From positions 1,116,001 to 1,180,000 of the forward strand of contig JBLDXI010000002.1 of the NCBI GenBank assembly GCA_047495785.1: a DNA stretch of 64,000 nucleotides, written 5' to 3'. Source of the stretch: Lepidodermella squamata (lineage: Eukaryota; Animalia; Gastrotricha). The translations under genes and the position numbers were made by a program. Positions 12,306 to 39,699 of the stretch are shown piece by piece (within the stretch, counting starts at the first letter, position 1; the number at the start of each line of letters is the position of its first letter). Under the pieces are notes generated by a model. The model was not told the DNA's origin and searched no databases. It was given only the letters and a program-made list of their open reading frames with translations.

Positions 12306-15300
12306 CTAGCGCCGAGATGGAGACAGGGGGCGGGAGGGGCTGAGGCCGCGAGTATGCATGGTTGAGACGACCGGTGAAGGGGCGGCGCCGGGCGGGGGCG
12401 AGATGCCGTGGCGACGCAAGTGCTGGCTCAGCCGCTCGCGCTCGAATCGTTCGTGCGTCAAACTGCGCCTGCTTCGCTCGAGTTCGGTTTCGCAGTCCAA
12501 CAGACGCTAAAAAAAAATAAAAAAGTTAAAAGTTTGACAAATGAAAAACAAAAAACAAAATTTACTCAACGTTTTCCTTAATCCAAATACTAATTTATCC
12601 CAAAAAGTTTAGGAATAAAAAATTAGGAATTTTTGGCTATTATTTGGACAATTATCGCACCAAATAGAGATTACATTAAATACTTGAATTAAGCCTTTGG
12701 AGGCAGCAATCGATTCGTAATTGCTAATTGCGAAAAATTCTGATCGGAAAAAATCATGTAATTCTTGAAAATTTTAAAAATTCAGAAAATTCAGAAAATA
12801 TTATTGCAAAATTCTACAATAATTTCCAATAATGTCGAAATTAACTAGTTGAAGAATATGTTCGCTTTTAGCCGAAATTTGATAAATATTCGGATAGATT
12901 TTTCATTTTTTTCAAAATCCAGAGAAATTCGGTCCAATTATAGCTAAAAAATACCGATAATTACCAAACAAGCTATTATCGGTTTTTTTTCATTTTCAAT
13001 TTTTTCAATGAAATAGTGGATGGATGATGGGATATGCTCTTAGTATATTTTATTTATTTTAGGAAAACGAAAAATTTGCAACAAAAAGATGGAAAAGCGA
13101 ATTATGGGAATCGCTGTAACTATAAAGTGACTGGTAAAATATTGTGAAATCTTACCGTTCTGAGGGTGATGAGTTCCGAAGTTTGACTTTCGCATTTCGA
13201 CTCGACCATGCGCAACTTTTCAACCGTGCACTCCAAAGTCGAAACCGCAGACTGAGAAAATTAAAAAAAAATTAATAAACTCCACCTTAATTATTTTGTC
13301 GAATTACGCACCTGTTTCGCTGTTTCCGCTGCGTATTGATTTTGCCGTTCCGAGTGAAGAATTCTCTCCAGACCGGCCGCAGTTGACCGCTCAGCCGCAA
13401 CTTGTTGCCGCAAAAGTTCAACCTCCGTCCGCAACTCCTCGCCAACTCGTTCCGACGACGCTAATTCCGCCTCTTTCGACGCAACCTGGCGCTGCAGCAT
13501 ATCACGGGCCGACTCTAACTTGGCACACAAATCGCGAACAGCCTGCAGGTCACGCATCAACGACTCGCGCTCACACGCCGCCTGGCGAAGTTCGTCCTCC
13601 AGAGCAGCTCGTTTCCGATCGCAAGTGCCTAGCGCCAACTCAGTTTGATGCGCACCCTGCGTCGCTTGCCTCGTTTCATGCTCCAACTGGCGCAACCGCT
13701 CGCGTAACCGGCCAATATCAGCCAGGCGCAGCTCCAACTCCTGCCTCAGCCCAACAGTTTCATCCGAAAGGCGATTCGCGTTCAAGTTCGCTGCCTCGGC
13801 GTCACCACAAGCCCGGCGGTATTGGTCGAGAATCTCCTGTCGCTCCCGTTCCTTCGCCGCTAGAATGTCCTCAGCCCGTTGCACCTCGAACAAATAGTCC
13901 TGAACCTGCCGTTTCAGCTCGTCACGCTCTCGTGACGTCGCACCTAGCTCGGCTGAAAACGCACTACTCTCGCGGGATAGCGCCGAAACCTCCTCGCGAA
14001 GCCGCGAAACCTCCCGCCGGCTCGTATCCAACTCGACCCGGCTCTCCTTCAACTCACCAGCCGTTGCGTCTAGCTGGCGGGTGATCTGCCGAATCTCCCG
14101 CTCCTTCGACCTAATATTATCCTCAGCATCGGATAATTTCGTCTGAGTATCAACCAACGACTCGCGTAACGTTGCGTTCACCTTATTCGCCATAGCTAAC
14201 TCGTCGCTGAGATACGCACCCCGTTCGGTTTTTTCGTCGACCAGGTGCGATAATGAGTCGCGCTCTCGGTCCAGCTCCATCAAATTCTTGCGTAAACGGT
14301 CGATTTCCGACTCGAGACGCGACCGATTCTCCTCCAGCTCACTCAACCGCTTATCCTGGGCGATTTCGTTCTCGCGAGATGCGGCTAGCGCGGCCTCTTT
14401 CGCGGCGAGACGGGTTCGTAATTCGCTAACCGACGACTCGGCCTCGTCTAGGAGTAGTTTCAAATGCTGCCCGGTCGATCGTTGCCGCTCTAAATCCGAC
14501 TCGAGGCGAGATAAATCGCCTTCTAACCGAGATTTCTGCAACTCCAACTCGTCGACTCGCGACCTAGAATCCGCGAGTTGCGTCGATAGAGTCGCCCGGT
14601 CACGGTCCAGTGAGTCGATAACCGCACGCTGGTCCTCCGCCCTGAGTTCTGACTGGGTCCGCTCACTCAGCAGCTGCTCGCTATTCATTTTCAACCGATC
14701 CCTTAACGCATCTCGCTCGGAATTAACGCGACGTAGCTCTGAGGCGATTTCGTCCCGTTCCTGTTCGAGGCGGCGAATTGCCAGGTCGACCGAGGCCGGG
14801 GTGGGCCCGCGGCTGCTGGTCAAACGGCGGATCTCCTCCTCGCTGCGACGCGTGATATCAGAGGCGCGGTCACGCTCGGCCGCTAGGAGTTTATTCGCGG
14901 CGGTTACATCAGCCAATTGCTGGCGCAATTTCTCGACTAACCGGGCCATTTCCTCCCGCTCCCGGTCGAACCCGGGTTCGTTCGCGACCAGGTTCGGGTC
15001 AGACCGGCTGCGGGCTCGGCTACGCACCGGTGATTTCGACTCGCTGCGATTCTGCGCCGCCTTAGTCGGGCTGGGTGACCGGTGGGTCGAGCGGCCCCGG
15101 GTGGGTGACGCCGCCCCGCCGATCCCGGACGGTAGCCCGATCGAGTAGCGGCGGATAATTTCCTGCAAATGATCAACTTGTTGCCGCCAGTAGTCGCGTT
15201 CCGACTCCAATTCGTGGATCCAAGCGTCGACCTTGGACGGGCTCGACGCCCGGGTGGTCCGGCTAGCACCCGGCGGCGCCCCTTTCACGCGACCCCGGCC

Positions 15301-18300
15301 CGCATTCGGCACAGTTGCCGTAACGCCACATCCCGACTTCCGCTGGCACCTCTCCAGCTCTAAAATCAGTTCCCGCTCGTTCGACGTCAATCGATTAACC
15401 CGCTCCGTCAAACGGTGCTTATCCTCCTTAAGACACGCGCATAGCGTTGAGACGCGCTCGAGCTCAACCTCACGGCTCTGCAGGGATCGCCGGACCTCGG
15501 CGTTTTCAACCTCAAACCGGCTGACAGCCTCGCGTAATCGGGCTAGTTCGTGCTCGGCCTCTCGCAGCATTCGCCGGGTCTGGTCCAACTCGACCCTCGC
15601 AGATGATAGATTCATATCCACCGTCCTGATAGCGGCTTCTTTCTCGCGTTCCGCCTTTTCGACAGCGCAGTCCACTTCTTTAATGCTGACCTCGAGCTCG
15701 CGATTCACGGCGTCGAGTTCTACGCTGCGGCTGTGGGCGGCGCGGCTTTCGGCCGTCGCCATTTCGACCTGGCGCTCCAGTTCGCGCGTTCGTTCTTGCA
15801 GGTAGTCGACCTGGATGTTGAGTTGGGCGATGAGGCGCTCATTGGCGCGGTTTTTAGCTTCTAGCGTTACGATATCGACTGATTTTCCGCCGATTCCGCT
15901 CGCGCCGAATGACTCTAGCTCGCGTTGCAGGCGCTGGATTTCAGACTCGCGAGCTTCGACCTAATAAAGGAAAAAATCACAAAATTCAATGACCGATCGG
16001 GAAAATTGTGTAAAAATGACATCAAGCTTTGAATTTGGATCCAAGATACTTATCGAGATAGGTTTTGCCTAAAGACCAATCATTATAACAAATGAAGTAG
16101 GCATAAAATGTCGGAAAAATTTGACTAAATTTGCAAAAATAACTCTGAAAATATTTTTAGAGAAAAATAATGAATTTTTTCGGAATTAAATTCTAATTAA
16201 TTTCAGCCGGCCAATTAAGCTTGAAATCGAGATATGTATCAAGTTGTAGAAAACAGCAGATTAATTAACACAAACAAGCTCACAAACAGATAAACCATTT
16301 TTATGGGTTTCATGCGTTACATGAGACATTTACCTGAGCCGGAGCCCAATATGGAACCTTGATTCAGAAAAAAAGCAAACAATCGAATTTAATTGGGATT
16401 TCTAGAATTTCTCATTGATGAATCTTTCCAGTTGTTTTTAGAAGCTTTGCCCGGAGTTCCAACAAATCATCAATCAGTAAATTTTCCATATATTTTCAAT
16501 TCAATTTTTCAAAAATTGCATTCAATTTCAGCGAAATAAATTCTTTTTTTTATAAATCATTTTTTATGAAGGATCGTTTTAATTCGAAAAAAATATATAA
16601 TTCTGGAGAGTCGTATCAGCTTACAATCACTTTTATATTGCGATTTTCCCATGATGAAATTTAGCCTCGATTTCTGTACCCGATTTCCCCATCAATTCGG
16701 ATTTCTGAGGGGCTAGCCGTCACTAATAAAATTAGTCAAAATCTGTATTATTTGTTAGGGCAGTGATGTGAAGAGTAACTTTCAATTTAGTCCAGAATTT
16801 TATTGCAGAATATTTCCTATAAATACCGAATTCGAATACCAAAAAAAACGAACTGACCTCGAGTCGAACCGATCGCCTGGCCTTACTGCCATTACGTCGC
16901 AATGACATGGCTTACAAAATCAATTTAAAACTCAGCCGAAAATATGTGCGGCTCGTAAAAACAACCTAAAGTTAGCCGAGTAATATTGCGCAGTTATTAA
17001 ACGTATTCTGTTGTAAAAATTTGCGACAAAGCGCGGCGAACAATAGACGATTGGGTTGTGAAAAATTGGCGTAACACCGCGCCTATTGACAAAGTAAGAG
17101 TCGCCGTAAATCGCTGCAGATTATTGTGAAACGGATGAGTGCACAAGGTGAAGGGATTAAGGTCTACCGAAATCAAAGCCCGTGTGTTTACTCGCGCCTA
17201 GAATGAGATGATGATAACCCATTGACAAGGCATAAAGCACTTGAAAGGCAGTGAAAAAGATCATTTTCTCAAAAACAAGCTTTAATACTTATTGACTGGC
17301 AGTTGGTTGGCCCGCCTAAATCTGTGTGAATAGCGACGCGGGCCCGTAAACAGAAAAATCAAAACACGGCTAGAAAAAGGCCATCATCATGGTCAGAAAA
17401 CGGCCACCAGGTATATGAGCGGGCGCGCGCGGGGGCAAAAATGGGCGCGGCGTGAAGTAAAACAAAATAATAAATTAGGCAAAACAACGTGAAAAGAGAT
17501 GAATATTGTGGATCCACTTGATGATAAACACGGCGCGCGCTCGCCCGCCACAACATGCGCTGAATTATTCAGAAGACATTTTTGGGCGCACTTTTTAAGG
17601 AAGGTGCGACGACCCGTGTTGTTTTCACGACGGGTTGTGTTATTTACAATATCGGTACACTGCGAGCTTGCCAATAATTGAGAGCTGGATGGAGAGAGAC
17701 ACCGTTTCGCTACTACTACTACAACTGAACACAAATAACCCGCAAAGCAGGACATTTGTTGTTCTAATGCAGCTTTTATTTGAAAACAATTGAATGGCAT
17801 AACCTACTGGCTTTATGTGCGTGAAATCTGTATTAATAAATCGAGTCTATCAATAATAAATTGCGGCGACATTGATCAGCGAAAATGCCCGCTAATGGCT
17901 TGCAGTAAAAACAATAACCGCCCTCCGGATCTTTCGATTCCGCAGGCGGGTCAACGTTAAACAATAATCTCAGCTGAATACACACATTTTTATCGCAAAA
18001 ATAAACAAAGGTGATTGCCTAGTTAATTGCACGGCTTCGCAAATACTTATATAATTTTGTTTACAGGTAGCTAAAACGCTAAGCTCTAGGGCTTTTTGCG
18101 AGCGCGACAATCGATAACCATCAAGTAAAAATGGCAGGTTATTTTCGTTGAAAATTGAAAAACAAGAAAATCACTAGAGTCGCACTAAAGAATAAATTTA
18201 TTAACCCTCTCAACTACAAAAAATCGCCCTTAAAGCGCTAATTTATTCGATTTTCGCATGAGAGGCTGATGAAAAATGAACGGAAGTTTTCGTGAATTTT

Positions 18301-26745: not shown

Positions 26746-29700
26746 ATGGCTTCGTCGTCCGCAGGCCTTTTCGGCTCAATTCTCTTCCCGCGATCCGGCT
26801 CACGACCATGGCACCTCTCGTTCGACACACCCTCGATTGAATCTGAATTCTTCAAGGCGGCCTTCCAACGGCGGCGGAAACTCTTCCAACAAGCCACGTT
26901 TCTACTCAGCGTAGTCTACGCGGCCTGGTTATCTTACATCGTCGCGAAAGGGTCGTCCCAGGAAATCGCGCACTGGAAACCGTACTCAGCGTTATTCGCC
27001 GTTGTCACAGTTTTCAGCATAGTGCTATTGATAATTTCGTTTCTACGCCGGTTTTTCAACCCGCGATTGTTGTTGGCCTACGGAATTTTCGTAGTCGTGC
27101 TATCATCGGCCGCGTTTATTATCCCACTCGCGACTGCATCTACCTCAGCACTGTCGCCTGTCGGCATTTTCTCGATCTACGCAATTACGGTGTTTCTATC
27201 GTACACCCTGTTATCGATACCCCTGGCGGTTTGCATCGGATTTTCACTGGCCCTGACCGGGGTGACTGAAATTTTGTTCATTGCCCTGTGGAATTTTACG
27301 AGGGCAGAACACATGGCGGCTCGAATTCTGGGCTATTTCGCCCTGCATGCCGTCGCTATCTTCTTCCACCTTTTGTACCAAGCCCGTCTGAGGACTAGTT
27401 TTTGGTACGTAGCTCAGTCTCTGTTGACCCGGCGAACGATGGAGGGCGAGAAAAGCTTGAAGCAGAAGATGATTTTGTCTATCATGCCGCAAGCGTTTGC
27501 CGAAAAGACGTTTTTGAATAAGAAGAAACGCGGCTCAGGGGCGGCCGGGCGTGACTCGAACCGGTCGAGCCAGGCCGGGGCGTTGGACCTGGGCGAAACC
27601 CTGGCGGCCGAGCAATCTATGAAAATCAAACGACCAGTCCGCGATTCGTCGGGCGACAACAGCGGGACCGGGTTCGGTCTCGAGGTTTTCCGCGACTTTC
27701 ACGTCGAAAAACTCGACGCTGTGTCGATTGTTTTCGCCGATATTTGCGGCTTCACGAAGATGAGCTCGAACAAACACGCCGCAGAGTTGGTGTTCCTCCT
27801 CGACGATCTGTTCGGCCGATTCGATCGAATTTGCGCCGTGTCCGGCTGCGATAAAATCTCAACCCTCGGCGATTGTTACTACTGCGTCAGCGGCTGCCCG
27901 ACCCCGCGTGTCGACCACGCCGCTTGCTGCGTTGAAACCGGCCTTGGCATGTGCAAGGCCATTCGTAAATTCGACGAAGACCACAAGGAGGAGGTCAACA
28001 TGCGAGTCGGTATCCACACTGGTTCGGTTCTGTGCGGTGTCGTCGGGTTGAAACGCTACAAATTCGACGTGTGGTCGAATGACGTGACCATGGCGAATGA
28101 AATGGAGTCGAGCGGCCAGCCGGGTCGTGTTCACATCTCGCACGACACTTACGAGCACGTTAAAGACGACTATGAACTGGAAGAAGGCCCGGAGATCGAC
28201 GATATTCGAAAGCCGAAAGAAATCGAGGAGTTTTACGACCCGCTCAAGAAGCGAATGGTAGTCGACGTTCGTGCGGTTGAGAAGTCAATCAAAACTTACT
28301 TCATCACCGGGCGGAAAAAGCCGTGCCGTTACCAGAAATTGACTGATGACGACGAAATTCCGGAGAACGCGAAAATTGCGGCTGAACCGGCGAAATCGCA
28401 TGACCATCATTCGAATCAGAACGCTGAGACGCCGTTGTTGAAGGAAAGCGCCAGCACTGCGGACGGCACGGCGAATACTACGCTGAATTTGCTGAGCAAA
28501 CGCACGGCTCTTTCAGCCAGCCAGGAGGGGCTGAATAAACCAGGCAGTGGCGCTGCTGCGTCTTCTGGCGATGAAAAACACGGCCAACATGCGAAAGGCA
28601 ACGATGAAAAATTGCTCGACGTTGTTCGCCAGGACATGCGCAAACCGAACAGCTTTACAAGGTTAGAATTTTTTTTGAAAAATCCGCCTTAAAAATTGGT
28701 GTTTCTCGGAAAGCTTGCCATTTTTTGCAATGAAAGAAAGAATTTTCCACCCAAATAAAAATCAAGATTTTTCTTGAATAAATTTTTGCACTGCATAGAG
28801 GTTTCAGAGCTTAATTTTCGGATTCTTCGATATTTCGGCTTTTTTATTAGTCGATACTGATGACCCTGGATTTTTTATTTGAATTACCTGGTCCTATCAG
28901 CTAGGCTGAAGAATTTTCAATTTCAATGTTTGATTCCAAGACTTCTGATATCGGAAAAATCACTGATTTTTAAAATCGATACTTGGAATCGATATCGGTC
29001 CTAGCTCGAAATTCTTACAATAGTGAGACCTATCGAATAGGCGTAAAACAAAAAATATTGAGGCTCTAGAGCATTAGGAAAATTTGAAAAAGGGTCTTCC
29101 TGTTACCGGAACCAAATTTACAGTGAGCGGAACCAAATTTGCTGTATCGGAACCAAATATGCTGTTAGCGGAACCAAATTTTAGAATTTTCTAGTGGCCT
29201 GAAATGGCTTTTCGGAAATTTATGGAATTGGCCCCAATAATTCTAGAAAATTCTCCAGTGAATTCAGCGCAACATTCTGTACAAGACGCAGTGTTCAATT
29301 CAGAATTCATGCTTGGCCTAAATTTCTTAGAAATATTCAAAAAATGACTCTTGGCCCATTTCGAGTTTGGTTCCGCAAAAAGCAAATTTGGTTCCGCTAC
29401 AGCAAATTTGGTTCCGCTCACTGTAAATTTGGTTCCGCTAAAAGATATTCCCTTTGAAAAATTGATGCGGGTGGTGGAGCCTCAAATTTAGTGCTGGAAT
29501 CTGAAGTTACGGGGGTTTAAATGTTAAAACAAAAAATTCCTCCTTAACAATACTGTTTCAAGTAAATGTGAATTAAATTCATTTCTGCGGATTTATGAAA
29601 ATGATTAGTAAAAAAATGACCAATTTTGTGACGAGCTTTTCGAGAAATGAGTTTTGCACGTCGCATTCTACACTCGGTCGATGATTCATCCAGCTGAGTG

Positions 29701-32301
29701 TATTTTTATTTCGTGCTAAATTACATGGTAAAACGCCAATACCAAAGTGGTCACGATTGATACTTCTGATCATTATTAGCACTGGTGTTACATTTCCCTG
29801 TTTTTTTTCTTATTTTAGACCACCTGTTGGCGTTATCTCGCTGCGATTCGGCGATCCGAGACTCGAAACTGACTACTGCTGCCACTCTGGCGACCCGCAA
29901 CCGTCCGAAGAAACAGTCACCGCTTCAACAGCCGGTGGCGCAAAGGCCAATCTGCAGCACCTGTCAAATACCGGCCCGTCGATTTTCGCGTCGTGGATTG
30001 TTTCGCTGATTTTCTCCGCTCTGATCCTAGCCGCGTGTTTCGCCGCGTTCCCGCTCTCGAAATTTTTCATCGCCGCCGCTTTGGTCAGTTTCATCCTGAT
30101 CGTACCGCTCTTCCTCGTACTGCCCGTTTTTTCAATGGTCGGAAAAGGCTGCGGACCATTCGCGCGCCGTTCATGGTTCCCGCGCCACGTAATTTTCATC
30201 ATTACCGCGAGTTTATTCGCGTTACTACCAGCTTTAATCACGCTCTTCGACTTCTCATGCGATGTTATTGGCCAGCAAGCGAGAGCCGCGGTTTACTTCA
30301 TCGTTTTAATGGTCGCCTTGATTCACTTCGCGTTATTCGCCCACGTGCCGTACTGGCTACGTGCCACCTTAAGCACGGCAGTTGTCATCACGATTTCGGT
30401 GCTGTTCGCCAAATTTCCATGCAACATCGCGAATATTCAACCGATTTCCGGCGCCCAGAATGGCACATCGCCGACTTTCCAAGCGATCACCGCCGTCGAA
30501 ACACCGGTCGATGCTGCTGACTCACCGATGGCGCAGGCCCTGCAGAAAATGAACGCAACCCTCCTCGCGCCGGGTCAGTTGTGGCTCGGCCCGACTGTTA
30601 TCATCTACTCAACGCCGAATCTGCTCTTCGTCGAGGCTGTCATCGCGCTGGCGAGTGTCGCCCTCATGGTTTGGCTGGTGGCTCGCGAGTCTGAGCTAGC
30701 CGCGCGCCTCGCCTGGTACTCAGCCATCGAAAACCGACTGACCACCTTCGCGGTTCGCCAGGAGCAAAAGGTGACCGACGGCCTTGTCGCCAACATTATC
30801 CCGCCGCATATTTCCGACAAATTCAACCAGCGCCAGGTGTTTTCTCAGCAACACGAAAACTGCGGCGTCATGTTTGCTTGCATCAAAAATTTCTCGGATC
30901 TATACGAGGAGGGGTTCAATAGTGGCGAGGGGTACCTGCGAGTTTTGAACGAGTTATTCGCCGATTTCGAGTCGCTGCTCGACAAGCCGCAGTTTAAAGA
31001 CGTCGAAAAAATCAAGACGATCGGACCGTGCCTGATGGCGGCCAGTGGGCTGGACAACACGCGGCGCGGCCAGAACAAGGACCCGAATGCGCACCTGTAC
31101 GCACTAATGGACTACTGTTTTGCGTTGATTAAGACGCTGAAGGACTTCAATCGCTCGATGCAGTCGTTCACGTTCAAGTTGTACATTGGTTTTAATGCTG
31201 GCGACCTGGTGTCTGGTGTCATCGGTTCGACGAAACTGCACTACGACATTTGGGGCGATACTGTCAACGTTGCGAGCCGCATGTATTCGACTGGTGAGAA
31301 ACTTATTTATTTCATATAAAATAAGAGTTTTTCAATTTTACGCTAATTTTCAGGGTTTTTTTTACTGAAATTGAGTAAAATAATTTGAAATTATAGCAGA
31401 GGGATGAAATGCAGCTACTGATTAATGTTTTGTTGAGGTTTTCTGCCCAAAAACAGAATTTGTGGTTGTTAACAAAGGAGGTCAAATTGTTGATCCTGCT
31501 TTTACTTATTTAGGTAACGAAAAGCTGGATGTTCGAAAAGCGGTGTCGGGGGCCCGTATTAAGTTATGCCGCAAAGCTTTCGGTGCTTGGAAGAAGTATA
31601 TTTTTGGTAATGAATAATTGATATTCGCGTAGAAATGAAATTTTATCGCGCCGATTCCTGAGGTACTTTAAAGATGAAAATCCCGAAACTTCAAATTCTA
31701 CCCAAGGGAAGAAAATACATTTCAAAACTGGCATTCTTAATAGATTTTCTACCATGTACCAGCGAGTTACGTCCTGAGACACCCCCATGCAAAAAAATCC
31801 GCCTTAAAACCCCAATTTTGACTCGGGTGTTAAGAATAGTAAGTTACAACATAATCGTATGAAAATCAGAAAAATTACAACTAAAATTAATATTGAATAT
31901 TTGTGGCGTCGTTATTAAGGATTAAGGGTTAATAAATCCAATCGTCAAATGGAGAGAAAGTCTCAATTTTCTAACAGCGATTTTTTAGGCTGTTCTGGGG
32001 CCTAGGCGGGTAAATTCAATAGCAGCAGTTGAAGTTATCTCATAGGTTGTTTCATTTTTTGTAATTATAATCGAAATTATTCTTTACTCAAATTATTTTC
32101 TTGTTTCTGCTATTTTTAAATCCGGATATGTTTGCTATTTTTCCAGGCAAGGATGGTCATATCCAAGTAAGCGAAGAAGTCGCCAACAAGCTGGGTGACG
32201 TTTACACGTTCGAGCGCCGTGGCACTGTGTTCGTGAAGGGCAAGGGCGATATGAACACGTTCTTCGCCGTCGACAAGAAGCCGGGAGCGACGTGGAACTG
32301 A
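26746..32301 (+). CDS. ADCY9: Membrane adenylyl cyclase, type 9-like (exons ~26746-28661, 29819-31292, 32147-32301)
   Basis: Two transmembrane clusters and two cyclase domains. C1 has [34 protein letters not shown] and [10 protein letters not shown]2 has VEKIKTIG and [18 protein letters not shown]. These carry type-9-specific features. Confidence 0.93.
29092..29452. mobile_element. Mutator/MuDR-type MITE with long TIRs built of ~20-bp subrepeats and a 9-bp TSD
   Basis: The element starts GGG and ends CCC. It has 4x CGGAACCAAA on the left and 4x TTTGGTTCCG on the right. TTTGAAAAA flanks it at 29083-29091 and 29453-29461. Confidence 0.85.
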
Positions 32302-33946
32302 CCGGAGTGAATGAATGATGAACTACACAAGTGCCAGCCTCAAAGATCTCACGAGTCGTTACAGAAAATCAACACTTTTTCGATGAAAGTAATAAAAATT
32401 GTACTTATTATCATAGCTCACGCTTACCTCTTGATATATAATGTATAAAAAATGTGTAAAATTTTCCGCCCGCTTGGCCGCTTTTTATTTGCATTATTTA
32501 CGGGTGTTTTGTTGTCTGTTCTATCGGGCGAAGGTGGAAAATGATCAACAGTAATAAAGACGAATCCTTGCCTCGTTGTATACGCTGGTTTTCAGACTTG
32601 CCACCACAGTCGAGTTATTATAATCTTTGGAACCTGAAGCACTGCCGAGAAATAGCCGTGTATTTCTATGTTATTGGTATATAGAATCTTAAATTAATTA
32701 TATTGATATTATATTGAGAGAATCACTGCCCGCTGTCATATTTCATGTAAAGTGTTTCAAATAATTTAACAGTCATGAGATGTGATCAAATATGCCGACT
32801 TTAACTATATACATTTAGAAATGCGATACAATTTGTGCGAAAAATATTTGTTTGACGGACTATTTTCTTGTTGGTTATATATATTTTTCTTACAATCCGT
32901 CCCTATTTTTGTGTCAGCCTTGAAGCAAGAAGAATAAAGCTAGATCACACTGAAATATCTTGACGATCCTTCCATCATTCGGCGTTACAAATATATTATT
33001 ATTTAGCTTACTATTTGATATATTACTTGATTTTTCGCAGCAAACTGTGAGCACAAGCTGAACCCGAGTTGATAAAAAATATATTATATATTAGTAAAGA
33101 ACTATATATTTCACATTGTTGTTAATTGGATGGAAATTTATGCTATTTGACGCAGACTGAAAAATTGATGTTGCTGTTGAGAGAACCGATTGCAAAATTT
33201 TTCATATTGTCGTGGGATAAATTTATAGTCGATCGAACTTTTTGCATGGAATTTTCGTCTCGTACACAACCGTAAATAGCCGCCATTCTTGTTATACTAT
33301 TATTATTATTATATACCATTTTGCCGACTTGACTTGAAACAAAGAAAAATAGATGAGCGGCTATCGTTTATAGTGCCGGAAAAATCGAGGAAATAAAAGT
33401 GAACATAACGCGAGAAAATGTGTGAGTTGTTTTTTACCGCGGCGCCACGGCAAACAAGCGATTTTAATAAAAAACACCGGCGCGATATTAAGGTGGTATT
33501 ATTAAAATAGCGCCTATTTTTCGGCTGCGCTTCAGACGCTATTTTTGATGTTGCTGCTGAGTATTAAGGCGGTGTGTGTTATTCGCACTTGCGGCTGCTG
33601 TTGCTGCTGCAGCGCTTCGATCGAATCGGGCCATTTGCTGCAATCATGATAACGCCGTGTTGAACTGAATGGTTTTATAATAAAAGGCAGGTCGAATTTA
33701 TGGCGTAGGCGTGTTCGAAATACAATATTATGATAATAAAGACCTGATTTATCCTCCTCCCACCTTGCAGGGCTAAAGCGGCGAGTTATTACGTGTGAAA
33801 AATAATAGCTTTATAAAAGTCAAAGTAATAGCGTTAGTAGTATATAACCGCCGGCGATTACTATATTGAATGCCCTGGGCCAGGTGTATTAATCATTATC
33901 GAAATTACTCAAAAGCCCAAAACCTGACAGATTATTAGACGAAAAT

Positions 33947-36900
33947 ATGGGGCCGAATTACCTTGTTCTCCTGCTGGGTAAATTTTACAAAAAAAATTAA
34001 CATTCACTATAATAAAGCAATTTTTTAGTCATCCTGTCGGCAATCTGCGATGCCAAAATTCGTTTAAAGCGCGAAAATCAGGACGATGTGGAAATTTTAG
34101 AGGAGGAGGAGGAAGACGACGACCAACCTGAACAATCTGCGTCAACCCCATTTAGCACAACCACCGGCGCACCGCCAGTTGTTAGAAAAATCTGGAATAT
34201 CGACATCGAATCGAAATTGGACGGTTTGAGCATCTCCGAGTCGCCATTTCGGCCTTATCACACCAAACCGAAAATTGTGGCTATTGATGGTGCGATTTTT
34301 TCAAGATTTTTTTACTGTGTTCCATAATCGTTGTTTTGTTCAGGACAAATTGTCGCATTTTTCTGCGCGTCAGCTTTTGAAGTCATTGCGATTGACGTCG
34401 AAGCTGGCTCAACTCTATGGCGCCGTTATTTAGAGTCAGGAAATCGCTCTTCATCATTTACAAATAAATGCCGAATCGGGTAAAATTATTATTTTTTTAA
34501 TTAACCTTGATTAACAATTCTTTTTAGATTCTGTGCTGGTGTCGATATTCACATTGACCTATCAAAAGTTAAAGCCGTGCCTAAAATCGGTAGACCAAAG
34601 TGCGACGTTCAGGTGTTCGCGATATCACCTGGTTCAGCTTTGTTCACCCTAGATGGAAGAACAGGACGAGATTGCCAAAATGCAGTGGTTCGCGCGAATA
34701 AATTTCAATTTAATTTTTAGCTAAATTAAAAAATGTCCTTAGAATCTTTTTACCGACACGCCGATTTCCATGTCGGAAGATGCGTCGCCATCAGCTGGTT
34801 ATGGTGTAACAATACCGCCTTTGATTGCCAAAGACTGGGTGGTAACCGCTATGGACACATCTCGAGCATGTAAGGCTTATTAAAGCGGTGATTTGAGTAA
34901 CAAAAATTTCATTTTTTCAGCCAACATTCGAGGTGGTTATATTGAAACCAGACTATTGGTAAGATGAAGTTATCCTTAAAAAATTATTTTATTTGAAAAC
35001 TTTGTGTTATACAGTCTAACACTTCGGTTATTGCACTTCGGAAAAGGTAGAGGAAAAAGCATCGATTTTTCAATTTCTCAATAAAATTGATGACCTAGAT
35101 ACGGAAGTGCGTTTAAAAGTCCTCTCGTTTACTCTGCTGAACTCGGTAGGTTGTTATGAATCAGCGATTATTCATCAATTTTTTACTCACGCGACAACTT
35201 TTCCACGTGCTTTAATTTTGCTTTGTGTAGATTTGATTTTCGCAATTGTCTCCCCGGCTAACTCGCCTTACGCTCCTTCAGCCGAAGACAGGTTTTCCTT
35301 CTGACTCCAACCTGATTTTTTTTAATTCCCACGCACATTTCTGTAGATTTGCAAATTCAGTTCTTGCGCTTCGGTTGCAAGATTTAACCGTTATTTGGAA
35401 TTATCGATTCCTTTACCACGATGATTTCGTCTTCGATTACCGCCATCCTCCAACTCTTGTCGAACTTGCCGACCCGGCTGGCCGGAAAACAACCTCACTT
35501 TTCATTGTAGGTTTTCAGTCCTAATAACTATCGAAACTTTAATTTCAACTTTTCAGTTGACGCCTTTCGGTAACATTTACTGGCTCGACGCAGCGACTGG
35601 GTACGAGCGGCATCAAGCTCATGTCAGGCCGCTGTACTTCGAGAAGGCAAATGAGGTCGACGAGAGGCGCGACAATTGGGTGCGCCTCAGTGGCGGCACT
35701 TTTGGCAACATTTTCAGCGACAACATTCCATCTGAAGAGACCAAATTCAGCGTAAAATTATAACTACGTTTTTAATTAGCCTCCTTAACAATTTTTTAAC
35801 AGAGATTCCCGAACTTGGAAATGCCGGACGAGGGAGTTGTAAGGCTGTCTCCTCCGGGCCTTGTTAACGGCAATTTGGTTATTGACGAAAACAGAAGGGT
35901 GGCCTATGTATCCTTTGTTCAGTCTTTATTTTGTAGGTTTTTACTAAAATTATTGTTTATTCTGATTATTCGATTTTCTATTTTTAGTTCTTGAACCACC
36001 TTCTAACGATGCGAATTCCGCTGGCGAGTGTTCAGCGAGTAGCAGTCACGTGACCGGGTGTCAACTCCCTAAACCGTTAGGCGTTGCACTTTGTCCGTTA
36101 AGCTGCGAGACGGGATTTATCGCGGCTTTAGAGGCCGGCTCGAATATGACCACCCCGGAGCAGATCAGCCTCGGCCATCAGTGGTGCGCTAATGTTTCAG
36201 AAAGCGGCGTCACTGCGATCCACCTTGACAACAGCTCAGTAGCTTGGTCATTTGCTATTACCCCAACACTGCTGCCTGATGGCCTCGTTCAGTAAGTTTA
36301 TTCCAAGTTTTTTAATTAATTAATTTTTTTTATTATTTTAAGGATACCGCAACTCCTCCATATTCGAGCATTTGACGTGCTTTTAGTGCCGCTCCTTTCA
36401 TCGATGCCGCAGCTAGGCGAAACAGTGTGGTTAGTCGATCCGTTCACGAGAGGTGAGTCATTTCTCCACAGATAATGTTCAGCAAAAAAATAACTTTATT
36501 GCGCGCACTGCAAAATTTTAAGGTAGACGTTTTTATATTTCAATAATCGCTAAATTTTATTCATTTATGTTGGCGCTTCAGACCTATTACCTTGGAATAG
36601 CAGGAATTTAAGGAATTGTACTAGTACAGTGTATTGTACTACAAGCCCATTACAGTGCGCGTACTTTGTTGTAATTTGTTATCATTGCGCGTGATTCATT
36701 GCGCTGCGCACGCGCCGTGTAAGGGGCGGAGCTTAGTCACACTATTGTTTGCACTACAACCGGGTCGATAATTACACGTGTGCATATGCAAATTTATAGC
36801 ATGGATGTGTCTTATCTCAGCCGAGAAAGGGGACCCGAAACTGAAGCGGAAAGAGTATCGCTTCTCGGCCTTTTTGGCTATGATCAAAGTGTAGTATCTT

Positions 36901-39699
36901 GTTAGCAAAACAGCTGAAAAAGTACAGGTCGACACCGCAGATGGCTGCGTTGATCGAGCGACGACATAAAGCGTTGCGACAGTACCGTTCTACGGGAAAC
37001 CCTGTGTTTCAGGCCAGGGCGGACGCGTTCTATGCTCGATTCAAAGAGTTAGCAGCCTTAGCTGAAGAGCGCAAGCACACGCGTAACCTTCAGCGGATGG
37101 AAAAGCGTAGAAGGGTAGATTCGGGGGCGTTCTTCCGGGCTTTTCGTGAGATCACAGCTGAGAGTGGGTCGGCACCAGGGCCAGCGATCCGCACCCTGAC
37201 CAACGAGGCAGGTGAGCTGGTTGTCGGTGACGCGGCCAGAGCCGAGTTGTTCCGCGATCATTACAAGTCGCAGTTGAACCCTAAGCCGAAGGTCGAGAAT
37301 GATCCAGAGATCAAGGCACATCATGCCGAGGTCGAAAGGATTGTTCAAGAGGATCGGGAGCTGTTCAACCCGATCGAGACCAAGGAGATTGACGTGAAAG
37401 TCATGATCTCAAGGGCTGAGATGAGAAGCGCGGTTCGACGTTTGAAGCTCAAGGCTCCAGGCCGTGATGAGATTTCGAACGTGCTCATCAAGAAGGGTGG
37501 GCCGGTACTTTGGGCGTATCTGCGCCATTTGTACAATTATAGCCTAGCTTGTGGGTTCGTGCCGGAGAGGTGGAAGTTGGCCGTTATCGTCCCGCTTCCG
37601 AGGTCAGGGAAGGACTTGTCGAAACCGTCAGGTTACCGTCCCGTGTCGCTTCTTCCGACAGTAGCGAAGCTGCTAGAGCTCATTTTGGCTACTAGGCTAG
37701 CTCTTCTTTTCAGGTCAAATAATATAATTCCTGATCATCAGTCTGGTTTTCAGATACGCCGATCGACGAGCGATCAAACTTTCCGATTCTCGCAGGCCAG
37801 AGCGATGGCGCGGCGTCGTCGAACGAAGATGGTGATGATCGCGGCCCTGCTGGATTTCGAAGGCGCCTTCAACGCGGTGTGTCACAACTCGCTGCGCGTG
37901 AAGCTTCGAGACTGCGTCGCTGTTCCAAGATCAATGGTGCGCTGGGTCTCGTCCTTCCTGACCGGCCGGACCTTTACGGTCAAGGTGAGTAGCTCCTTCA
38001 GTGAGACAGCAGATATCGGCTCAGGGGTTCCGCAAGGATCCTCATTGAGCCCTATACTCTTTGCCTTTTTCACAGCGGACTTGATGCCGGACAACAACAG
38101 CGACGAGCGCAAGGCCTTCACCGCTTCGTTCGCTGACGACGTGCTCTTGTTCGCTGTGGCTTGCTACACTGGGATGGCGAAGCAGCGGGTGCAGACGGCG
38201 CTGACGCGGGTCTCTCGATGGAGCAGACTCTGGAAGTTGCCGCTTAGTCCGCCGAAGTGCCAAATGCTGCGGTTTGGCGGACAAGTCAACGACGACGACC
38301 GGCTGTTTGTGGGTGACGAGAAGCTGCCGAAGGTCGCGGCGGCGAAGTACCTTGGTGTCACGTTTGACGCGATCGGGTCGTGGAAGCCGCATTTCGACAA
38401 CATCGAGGCGGATGCGCGATCTCGACTCGGGGCTCTTCGCCGGGTCTGCTTTCCGGGTTCGCCGCTTGGCTTTGCCTCGCGGAAGTTGCTGTATCTGACG
38501 ATCGTGAGACCGGTTCTTGAGTACTCCTGTGTGGCCTGGTTGGATGCGTCGTATGCGCAGAAAAAGCGCTTGATCGTGCTGCAGAACAACTGTTTGCGGG
38601 CGATCATCGGCTCGTCTATTCTGGACAAGCAGGACGAATCTGAGCTCTACCGCCTAACTGGAGTGGAGCCGCTGGAACGCCGCTGGCTGAAACTAGCAGT
38701 CGGCTTTGCTGATCGGGCTTTGCAGTTCGTGCCACCAGTCGCCGCCATGATCGCCGACCATCGTCGAGAGTGGGGCGTGGCTGGTACCCCGCTCGGACAG
38801 TTCATCAATTTTGTGGGCCGTTAGGCCTTGTCTATCTATGTATGTATATGAGCATCAGTCAGTTTAATACAGAAAATAAAACAACAAAAACCCATACACA
38901 ATACACATATATACACAAAATAAAATAAAAACAAAACCACATTAGCCCTGTGCCACGACTGTAAATGAGTGTGTGCGTTGTCATATATATTTCTTGTTTT
39001 TTATAAAAAGATGAAACGCATAACATATGCTGTTACTGTTATTAATTGCTGCTATTTGATATACTTGCTACTATTGTCGGTCAAAAGTTGTTAACAAGAG
39101 ACCGTTTTTCCAATAAAACAAGACCGTTGGAAAAAAAATGTAGTATCTGTTCTTTGTAGTTTAATATCTACAACGGCCTCCATGTGGGGCCTACGATATT
39201 AGCCCTATTTTTGGCTAGCCGGGCGGGAGCAGCCAGCTTGCTGGACCCCGTCCACGAGTCGGCCCGGTATTGCAGTACCTCCGGGATTCGGCTCACCCCC
39301 TGAAAAGGGGGATTGAAACTAAAAACAAATAGCCAGCTTAAAAAGTGTCTTCGCACAGGTATCAACGTGGCGAGGATAGATGACGGAGAGCTGATAATCG
39401 AGTCTGATCAAATCATCAAAGACGACGTTATTCACTTTGCGAAACTGGTCGCGCTCAGCGATTTATCGGCTATCAAAAGCAACACCCCCGATGCGGTCAT
39501 TTCCGACAGATTGGCCTCCTCAATTTTGCTCTATGGTGAGGGACATTCGTTCTCGAAATCTGGAAACGGCAAACAGCCTGCGACAAGGACCAACTTTCAC
39601 ATTTCTCTTCTACGTCTGGCTGATAAATCGTCAGCTGCTCAGCTTATTCCTCATTTGCATGTACTTCCCATCATTTTTTCGGCTCTTGTTTTGAGGTGA
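33947..39699 (+). CDS. Secreted, probably GPI-anchored PQQ beta-propeller protein homologous to bacterial quinoprotein glucose dehydrogenase (Gcd), 15 exons
   Basis: The frame stays open across 14 GT-AG introns. Signal peptide MGPNYLVLLLVILSAICDA. Gcd-like blocks: FCAGV..KCDVQVF...LFTLDGRTGRDC, YGVTIPPLI, and YSAELDLIF...EDRFANSVLALRLQDLTVIWNYRFLYHDDFVFDYRHPPTLVEL...GNIYWLDAATG. Hydrophobic C-terminus SSAAQLIPHLHVLPIIFSALVLR*. Confidence 0.82.
36723..36856 (+). promoter_or_regulatory. Putative U2 snRNA promoter (GC box and octamer)
   Basis: GGGGCGGAGC at 36723-36732 and a perfect octamer ATGCAAAT at 36786-36793, directly upstream of the U2 +1 at 36857. Confidence 0.55.
36857..36899 (+). ncRNA. 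U2: U2 snRNA gene, 5' part (nt 1-43), interrupted by a LINE
   Basis: ATCGCTTCTCGGCCTTTTTGGCTATGATCAAAGTGTAGTATCT is the canonical U2 5' end, with stem I, the U2/U6 helix region and the branch-point-recognition sequence GTAGTA. Confidence 0.97.
36899..38824 (+). CDS. LINE ORF2 C-terminal part (reverse transcriptase), uninterrupted; endonuclease lost by 5' truncation
   Basis: KAPGRDEI, YRPVSLLPTVAKLLE, QSGF, LDFEGAFNAV, GVPQGSSLSP, FADD, KYLGVTFD, then the Jockey-type tail RKLLYLTIVRPVLEYSCVAW...LQNNCLRAI. No C-terminal RLE or RNase H. The start codon in the ORF track is a TTG at the junction. Confidence 0.94.
   Translation: MLAKQLKKYRSTPQMAALIERRHKALRQYRSTGNPVFQARADAFYARFKELAALAEERKHTRNLQRMEKRRRVDSGAFFRAFREITAESGSAPGPAIRTLTNEAGELVVGDAARAELFRDHYKSQLNPKPKVENDPEIKAHHAEVERIVQEDRELFNPIETKEIDVKVMISRAEMRSAVRRLKLKAPGRDEISNVLIKKGGPVLWAYLRHLYNYSLACGFVPERWKLAVIVPLPRSGKDLSKPSGYRPVSLLPTVAKLLELILATRLALLFRSNNIIPDHQSGFQIRRSTSDQTFRFSQARAMARRRRTKMVMIAALLDFEGAFNAVCHNSLRVKLRDCVAVPRSMVRWVSSFLTGRTFTVKVSSSFSETADIGSGVPQGSSLSPILFAFFTADLMPDNNSDERKAFTASFADDVLLFAVACYTGMAKQRVQTALTRVSRWSRLWKLPLSPPKCQMLRFGGQVNDDDRLFVGDEKLPKVAAAKYLGVTFDAIGSWKPHFDNIEADARSRLGALRRVCFPGSPLGFASRKLLYLTIVRPVLEYSCVAWLDASYAQKKRLIVLQNNCLRAIIGSSILDKQDESELYRLTGVEPLERRWLKLAVGFADRALQFVPPVAAMIADHRREWGVAGTPLGQFINFVGR
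36900..39138 (+). mobile_element. 5'-truncated non-LTR retrotransposon (Jockey/I-group-like) inserted in U2 snRNA, with 10-bp TSD and A8 tail
   Basis: RT ORF to 38824, AT-rich 3'UTR, AATAAA at 39112-39117 and A8 at 39131-39138. TSD TGTAGTATCT at 36890-36899 and 39139-39148. Confidence 0.96.
39139..39298 (+). ncRNA. U2: U2 snRNA gene, 3' part (from nt 34 to the end)
   Basis: TGTAGTATCTGTTCTT, stem IIa TTGTAG-TTTAATAT-CTACAA, stem IIb GGCCTC..GGGCC, Sm site ATTTTTG at 39207-39213, stem III, and stem IV with loop ATTGCAGTAC. Confidence 0.97.

Follow-up and report, generated by a model that had tools for sequence, protein, structure and literature searches.

Here, we describe a spliced and expressed gene of the gastrotrich Lepidodermella squamata whose 710-residue product carries in its N-terminal half a homologue of the pyrroloquinoline quinone (PQQ) dehydrogenase propeller, with two mapped catalytic residues replaced. 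The gene occupies positions 33947–39699 on the + strand of a 64,000-nucleotide (nt) window (contig JBLDXI010000002.1 of assembly GCA_047495785.1, positions 1,116,001 to 1,180,000), and all coordinates below are positions in that window. As a whole, the findings are best explained, with confidence somewhat above even, by a host surface propeller that derives from a PQQ dehydrogenase and has lost catalysis. If this reading holds, it would show cleanly how the scaffold of a bacterial-type cofactor enzyme can be turned into a non-catalytic animal surface protein, and it would bear on the animal use of PQQ-type proteins by arguing for scaffold reuse, not quinoprotein chemistry.

The coding letters of the 15 exons (E1–E15) total 2130 nt, exactly 710 codons in an uninterrupted frame, and all 14 introns have GT..AG borders, with twelve measuring 48–56 nt, one 85 nt and the last 2906 nt. 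The single open frame of 15 exons and 14 introns put forward in the original prediction therefore stands, with partial RNA support. Contigs of two runs, X1 (evidently RNA) and X2 (DNA), were compared with window positions 33900–36500. Contigs of X1 are at least 99% identical to the window and precisely omit 35507–35556 and 35752–35802, which corresponds to the joints 35506>35557 and 35751>35803, and the match of one contig ends at 35932, the end of E12. Behind 35046, loose ends continue with the opening letters of E8 (E7>E8), and behind ~35291 with those of E10 (E9>E10). Moreover, two contigs bear the loose end ATCAACGTG (39361–39369, in E15) after 36452/36454, fitting E14>E15, and E14 itself is covered by RNA contigs. 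These observations confirm a real, spliced and expressed host gene. The RNA-seq check suggested for the predicted junctions succeeded in part: six junctions are supported in X1, and none for E1–E6 nor for E13/E14. RNA depth is low in X1, with coverage starting only at ~34600. In several X1 contigs (34640–36088), + strand sequence runs into the reverse complement of an exon close by (e.g., 34640/34793 and 35436/35589); these opposite-strand joints are probably strand-switch or assembly artefacts of the library at low depth.

The DNA run X2 derives from a relative diverged by ~5%. Its 11 indels of a length not divisible by three are all intronic, and the exons contain one indel only, of 3 nt, in the acidic linker encoded by E2. 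E1 is unchanged, in contrast to intron 1 with its 14 substitutions in 51 nt and 3 indels. Among the 40 of 102 differences listed, 20 exon substitutions are classifiable, with 16 synonymous vs. 4 non-synonymous changes, and three of the latter lie in the E2 linker. Given this synonymous excess and the frame-sparing indels, the X2 pattern is one of purifying selection on the protein in exactly this frame.

Family searches were run exon by exon on the spliced model. In Pfam, the match of E10 (35347–35506) is to PF01011, the propeller of glucose/ethanol/alcohol dehydrogenases, and covers profile positions 266–312 (E 4.9e-5, 22.7 bits); E3 (34344–34479), which carries the blade motif VIAIDVEAGSTLW, matches PF01011 at positions 61–99 (E 0.025, 13.7 bits). 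Among NCBIfam models, TIGR03074 (membrane-bound PQQ-dependent dehydrogenase, glucose/quinate/shikimate family) is best for both E10 (431–480, E 6.5e-4, 17.6 bits) and E3 (217–255, E 0.006, 14.4 bits), scores that do not reach its curated cut-off of 832 bits exon-wise. The two exons are spaced by 214 residues on TIGR03074 vs. ~200 residues in the gene. In addition, when E10 was used for an ESM Atlas feature search, clusters of PF01011 scored 0.96, and 20 of the 30 matches belonged to that family.

The original prediction had aligned the protein collinearly with E. coli Gcd, a likeness that proves to be beyond chance but weak. A tblastn search with Gcd found only E10 (Gcd 438–478, 34% identity over 41 residues, E 0.002). 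In Smith-Waterman comparisons with Gcd, the best matches of 5 of the 13 other exons fell within ±40 residues of their collinear position, whereas shuffled exons reached 1.6 on average (P 0.005). When single exons were compared by hhalign with 26 bacterial relatives, E3, E4, E5 and E10 were placed in order at columns 109, 160, 202 and 312 (P 0.004, 3.5e-4, 0.03 and 5e-8, respectively; E10 probability 94.8%), with order and spacing within ~10 residues of the gene spacing. A local profile of the bacterial relatives, searched by hmmsearch without filters, likewise recovered E3, E4, E5, E10 and E11 at positions 89, 137, 182, 289 and 350, with E5 extending over 182–201 and E11 over 350–356. The exon E14 (36343–36452), which holds the blade-like motif HIRAFDV..GETVW, was matched by hhalign to the analogous motif of a different blade (P 2.5e-4).

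Finer resemblances accompany these matches. The three Cys of E4 (34528–34687; FCAGV..C..ALFTLDGRTGRDC, with an alternative donor at 34684) are spaced as in Gcd 265–311 by Smith-Waterman, which also aligns the micro-exon E8 (35099–35145) with Gcd 405–413. By eye, the stretch YSAELDLIFAIV..AEDRFANSVLAL across E8, E9 and E10 resembles Gcd 408–446, and eight blade-like motifs of the A-x-D-x-x-x-G-x-x-W type can be read in E3, E4, E7/8, E10, E11, E12, E13 and E14. We conclude that homology to PQQ dehydrogenases, judged from the sequence, is real but thin: by the order and spacing of its profile matches, the N-terminal 60% of the protein is a genuine, extremely diverged PQQ-dehydrogenase propeller of membrane glucose dehydrogenase (mGDH) type, the remaining C-terminal part would be the rest of that propeller, and the whole protein would adopt an eight-bladed fold.

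Other searches gave less. A phmmer search of the PDB with E10 returned nothing at E ≤ 10, and mafft --addfragments placed only E10 sensibly, so that this alignment was discarded. An exhaustive protein search with E13 (35988–36291) against 1.84 billion representatives gave six spurious, repeat-driven matches (FAZ1-type coiled coils, a leucine-rich repeat (LRR) protein and others), a blank which says only that E13 has no relative in the library, the source lineage apparently being absent from protein libraries. Exact look-ups of four ORFs of the window gave no record. The Cys-rich stretch that makes up the first half of E13 is specific to the lineage, which made this exon a poor query. In the Atlas this exon was unrecognised (recognition 1807), and its Sushi-like leads were taken as noise. 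The EMC1 or FAM234 best matches named in the original prediction as the outcome that would speak against it did not occur in the exon-wise Pfam scan; EMC1, FAM234, IRE1 and AASDH-type readings were all rejected, as neither these Pfam families nor any other eukaryotic propeller family was found for any exon at E ≤ 10.

A scan of metagenomes and bacterial genomes with E10 identified 106 loci (45 metagenomic, 61 genomic). The relatives encoded there, from Bacteroidota, Acidobacteriota, Gemmatimonadota and Verrucomicrobiota, are uninterrupted open reading frames (ORFs) of ~700–790 amino acids (aa) of the TIGR03074 type; they lack the membrane domain, and most have a cytochrome c domain (CxxCH) at ~aa 470–555. 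Compared with the window, the 106 relatives again match only E10. Here they serve as a profile of the family and do not inform on the donor or on closeness. In these relatives the cytochrome c domain sits inside the propeller and is not C-terminal (L002:2526-4676, L007:5134-7290, L012:1382-3511, L038:5131-7284 and similar loci).

The soluble mGDH-type quinoproteins (~700–740 aa) resemble the gastrotrich protein in overall length and in the absence of the membrane domain, and their E10-like block lies at ~aa 293 of 717 vs. aa 299 of 710 here. They differ in keeping the catalytic residues and in carrying the CxxCH haem site at ~aa 470–555, whereas the gastrotrich protein has, at roughly the place of cytochrome c, a five-Cys, glycosylation-rich stretch without a haem motif. 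This stretch, the first half of E13 (35990–36120), contains five Cys and N-glycosylation sequons, and no relative of it was detected in the protein library or the Atlas.

The E10 block, FANSVLAL..W.Y...YHDDFVFD..PPTL, keeps the family-invariant residues W455, H462, D463, D468, P473 and L475 (Gcd numbering). The equivalent of D466 is Val (codon 35429–35431), in a column that is D in 96 of the 106 bacterial relatives, and the equivalent of K493 is Pro (codon 35563–35565, in E11). Further replacements in E10 are W465 to Phe, Q458 to Arg and the blade-turn Gly to Leu, the last two at residues invariant in the family. In E. coli mGDH, we take D466 to be the catalytic base and K493 to be essential. 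The glucose dehydrogenase named in the original prediction is thus, by sequence, not a working one, and the protein is most likely not a quinoprotein oxidoreductase. With Val at D466 and Pro at K493, we read it as most likely a non-catalytic propeller that would serve binding or recognition at the cell surface.

The targeting features fit such a location. The strongly hydrophobic head, MGPNYLVLLL(V)ILSAICDA, has a core with a mean hydropathy of 3.0 and spans the E1/E2 junction: E1 (33947–33977) supplies the start codon and MGPNYLVLLL, the first half of the signal-peptide-like head, before a split codon, and E2 (34029–34289) supplies its end (..ILSAICDA), the acidic linker, which is of low complexity, and the first part of blade 1. 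Only ~98 residues precede blade 1, made up of the hydrophobic head and the acidic linker, with no five-helix membrane anchor. After the putative signal peptide come ten Cys and five N-x-S/T sequons. At the other end, E15 (39359–39699) encodes the last strands, a candidate omega site SSAA (39628–39639), the hydrophobic tail LIPHLHVLPIIFSALVLR (39643–39696) and the stop codon; in the C-terminus, ..ADKSSAAQLIPHLHVLPIIFSALVLR-stop, small residues and a short spacer lead to a hydrophobic stretch that ends the protein and leaves no cytoplasmic tail, and hydropathy climbs to 2.8 over the last 11 residues. The signal-peptide-like head and the tail resembling a glycosylphosphatidylinositol (GPI) signal, both named in the original prediction, can be recognised by hydropathy and small residues, and the features fit what is probably a secreted, glycosylated, GPI-anchored protein.

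In the sequence of events that we propose, the 710-residue product would enter the secretory pathway through its cleavable signal peptide, and the hydrophobic C-terminal tail behind the small residues SSAA would most likely be exchanged for a GPI anchor. The body of the protein would descend from an eight-bladed propeller of the membrane glucose/quinate/shikimate type, minus the N-terminal membrane domain, and divergence would have left one BLAST-recognisable blade segment, with the catalytic Asp and Lys lost. The mature protein would then most likely bind or recognise partners at the cell surface without catalysis.

Several points weigh against this account. No single exon reaches the PF01011 cut-off of 26.7 bits (best, E10 at 22.7), although a rough sum of the E10 and E3 scores would exceed it, and the C-terminal 290 aa (E12–E15) have blade-like motifs and no collinear profile match. 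All 106 bacterial loci were caught via the seed FANSVLAL; their identities of 35–50% are inflated and do not point to a donor, whereas the evidence for homology from Pfam, NCBIfam, the Atlas, tblastn, hhalign and the collinearity test is not subject to selection bias. For D466 and K493, what was measured here is conservation, and their catalytic roles are background knowledge; the substitution count is a sample (40 of 102 differences listed); and the GPI assignment draws on hydropathy and small residues only, in a tail that has two His and two Pro. Finally, reports of eukaryotic PQQ-domain proteins mean that a transfer from bacteria is not to be taken as shown.

Those reports bear most directly on origin. 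A preprint of July 2026 (10.64898/2026.07.14.738520) gives 4,651 eukaryotic matches to an eight-bladed PQQ domain profile, metazoan ones included, and describes a clade of 100 domains across plants, fungi and metazoans, with a bdelloid rotifer protein among them, as well as separate metazoan members that are proposed candidates for bacterial transfer. UniProt A0A815A8Z3 is one example from the eukaryotic clade. These matches weaken the earlier premise that the family is essentially prokaryotic. The strongest alternative is vertical descent, in which the gene would belong to an old eukaryotic lineage of eight-bladed PQQ-domain proteins and would have reached this animal lineage without any transfer from bacteria. 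Besides the eukaryotic matches and the plant, fungal and metazoan clade, the fourteen introns and the extreme divergence would suit great age; against it, both recognisable exons choose the bacterial membrane-GDH model TIGR03074, a weak objection because NCBIfam holds only prokaryotic families. We regard vertical descent as possible, though on the unlikely side.

In favour of transfer, the sole recognisable kinship is with an overwhelmingly bacterial family, and length and layout are like those of the soluble bacterial forms. A phylogeny is not possible because only ~40 residues are alignable. An old horizontal transfer from bacteria followed by intron gain seems to us about an even bet. The fuller history, in which a bacterial membrane-type PQQ glucose dehydrogenase was transferred, gained 14 introns, died as an enzyme, was retargeted by a GPI signal and has long been kept under purifying selection, is a tentative proposal that we hold with clearly less confidence. 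Such a descent, if true, would amount to turning a quinoprotein from an enzyme into a receptor. Small invertebrates are already known to have intronised genes derived from transfer, and PQQ-domain proteins of eukaryotes have been described as well; the particular twist of this one is that the catalytic residues are gone.

Rather less credible is that the gene is a very divergent member of the PQQ/BamB-like secreted or GPI-anchored propellers, with no separate gene of glucose dehydrogenase type to be recognised. E3 does touch PF13360 (PQQ_2/BamB) at E 0.15, but E10 matches no models other than PF01011 and TIGR03074, and its block is of the W..Y...HHD.WD.D type found in true dehydrogenases. We hold this reading to be fairly improbable. 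We think it very unlikely that the protein is still an enzyme, namely a surface quinoprotein that works on dietary PQQ with a rebuilt active site. Purifying selection and the retained equivalents of H462, D463 and D468 in E10 would suit that reading, and active eukaryotic PQQ enzymes are argued for in the preprint cited above (10.64898/2026.07.14.738520), but the catalytic Asp is Val, Lys493 is Pro and W465 is Phe, the blade-turn G and Q458 are lost, and most of the protein no longer fits the family profile. A decaying pseudogene or chance open frame, for which one could cite the low RNA depth and the coverage from ~34600 only, was dropped as close to refuted, given a 710-codon frame intact over 15 exons, correct splicing, 16 synonymous vs. 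4 non-synonymous changes and frame-breaking indels confined to introns.

The favoured surface propeller can be set beside known systems. With E. coli Gcd and TIGR03074 it shares a collinear blade order, the block R-[FY]-A-x-S-[IV]-L-A-L..W.Y...H-D..D..P-T-L and the segment YxAxLDL[IV][FY] ahead of it. It differs from Gcd in lacking the five-helix membrane domain, in place of which it has a signal peptide and a GPI-like tail, in the changes D466 to V, K493 to P and W465 to F, in its fourteen introns and in BLAST-detectable similarity that is confined to E10. The eukaryotic eight-bladed PQQ-domain proteins of the preprint (10.64898/2026.07.14.738520), compared here by description, are likewise PQQ-type propellers in eukaryotic genomes, with transfer proposed for some animal members, but intact pockets for metal and PQQ were a condition of their selection, and these are lost here. 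By their family descriptions, the bacterial 'empty' quinoproteins (TIGR04528, acido-empty-quinoprotein group A) and BamB offer a parallel, being cofactor-free PQQ-type propellers that act as scaffold or binding proteins, but those proteins are bacterial and the exons here match neither model at E ≤ 10.

The remaining exons, all on the + strand, complete the gene. E5 (34743–34869) encodes YGVTIPPLIAKDWVVTAMD, the opening strands of the next blade, and is followed by the micro-exons E6 (34921–34958), E7 (35015–35046), E8 and E9 (35231–35291), for which a size range of 38–61 nt is given. Downstream of E10, E11 (35557–35751) holds the blade motif GNIYWLDAATG, and E12 (35803–35932) holds GNLVIDENRRVAYVS, similar to Gcd 592–604. 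E13 combines its five Cys with three N-x-S/T sequons, followed by the blade-like motifs GFIAALEAGSN and GVTAIHLDNSSVAW.

The neighbours of the gene are of eukaryotic or metazoan type, and include guanylate cyclases, a ZZ and Di19 zinc finger protein, AKAP28 and an LRR protein. The original prediction had judged contamination unlikely from metazoan flanks, and bacterial contamination is now ruled out: the spliceosomal introns, the spliced RNA, the metazoan-type neighbours, and the host U2 gene and long interspersed nuclear element (LINE) in intron 14 establish that the gene is integrated and expressed. Two tandem long open frames on the + strand (26746–28692 and 29757–31319) each encode the catalytic domain of an adenylate/guanylate cyclase (E 7e-56 and 7.5e-35, respectively), and an 823-aa open frame on the − strand (13291–15762) is locally GC-rich (0.59 vs. 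~0.43) and has only Pfam matches of coiled-coil type.

Intron 14 (36453–39358, + strand) contributes no part of the protein and contains a U2 small nuclear RNA (snRNA) gene split by a non-LTR retrotransposon. Rfam matches U2 at 39101–39301 with 118.6 bits, and an ORF at 36899–38824 carries an RVT_1 domain. The U2 gene (36857–39301) lies on the strand of the host gene and is interrupted after its first 43 nt, with its head at 36857–36899, the reverse transcriptase ORF of the element at 36899–38824 and a poly-A tract ending at ~39138. A 10-bp duplication, TGTAGTATCT, can be read in the sequence at 36890–36899 and again at 39139–39148.

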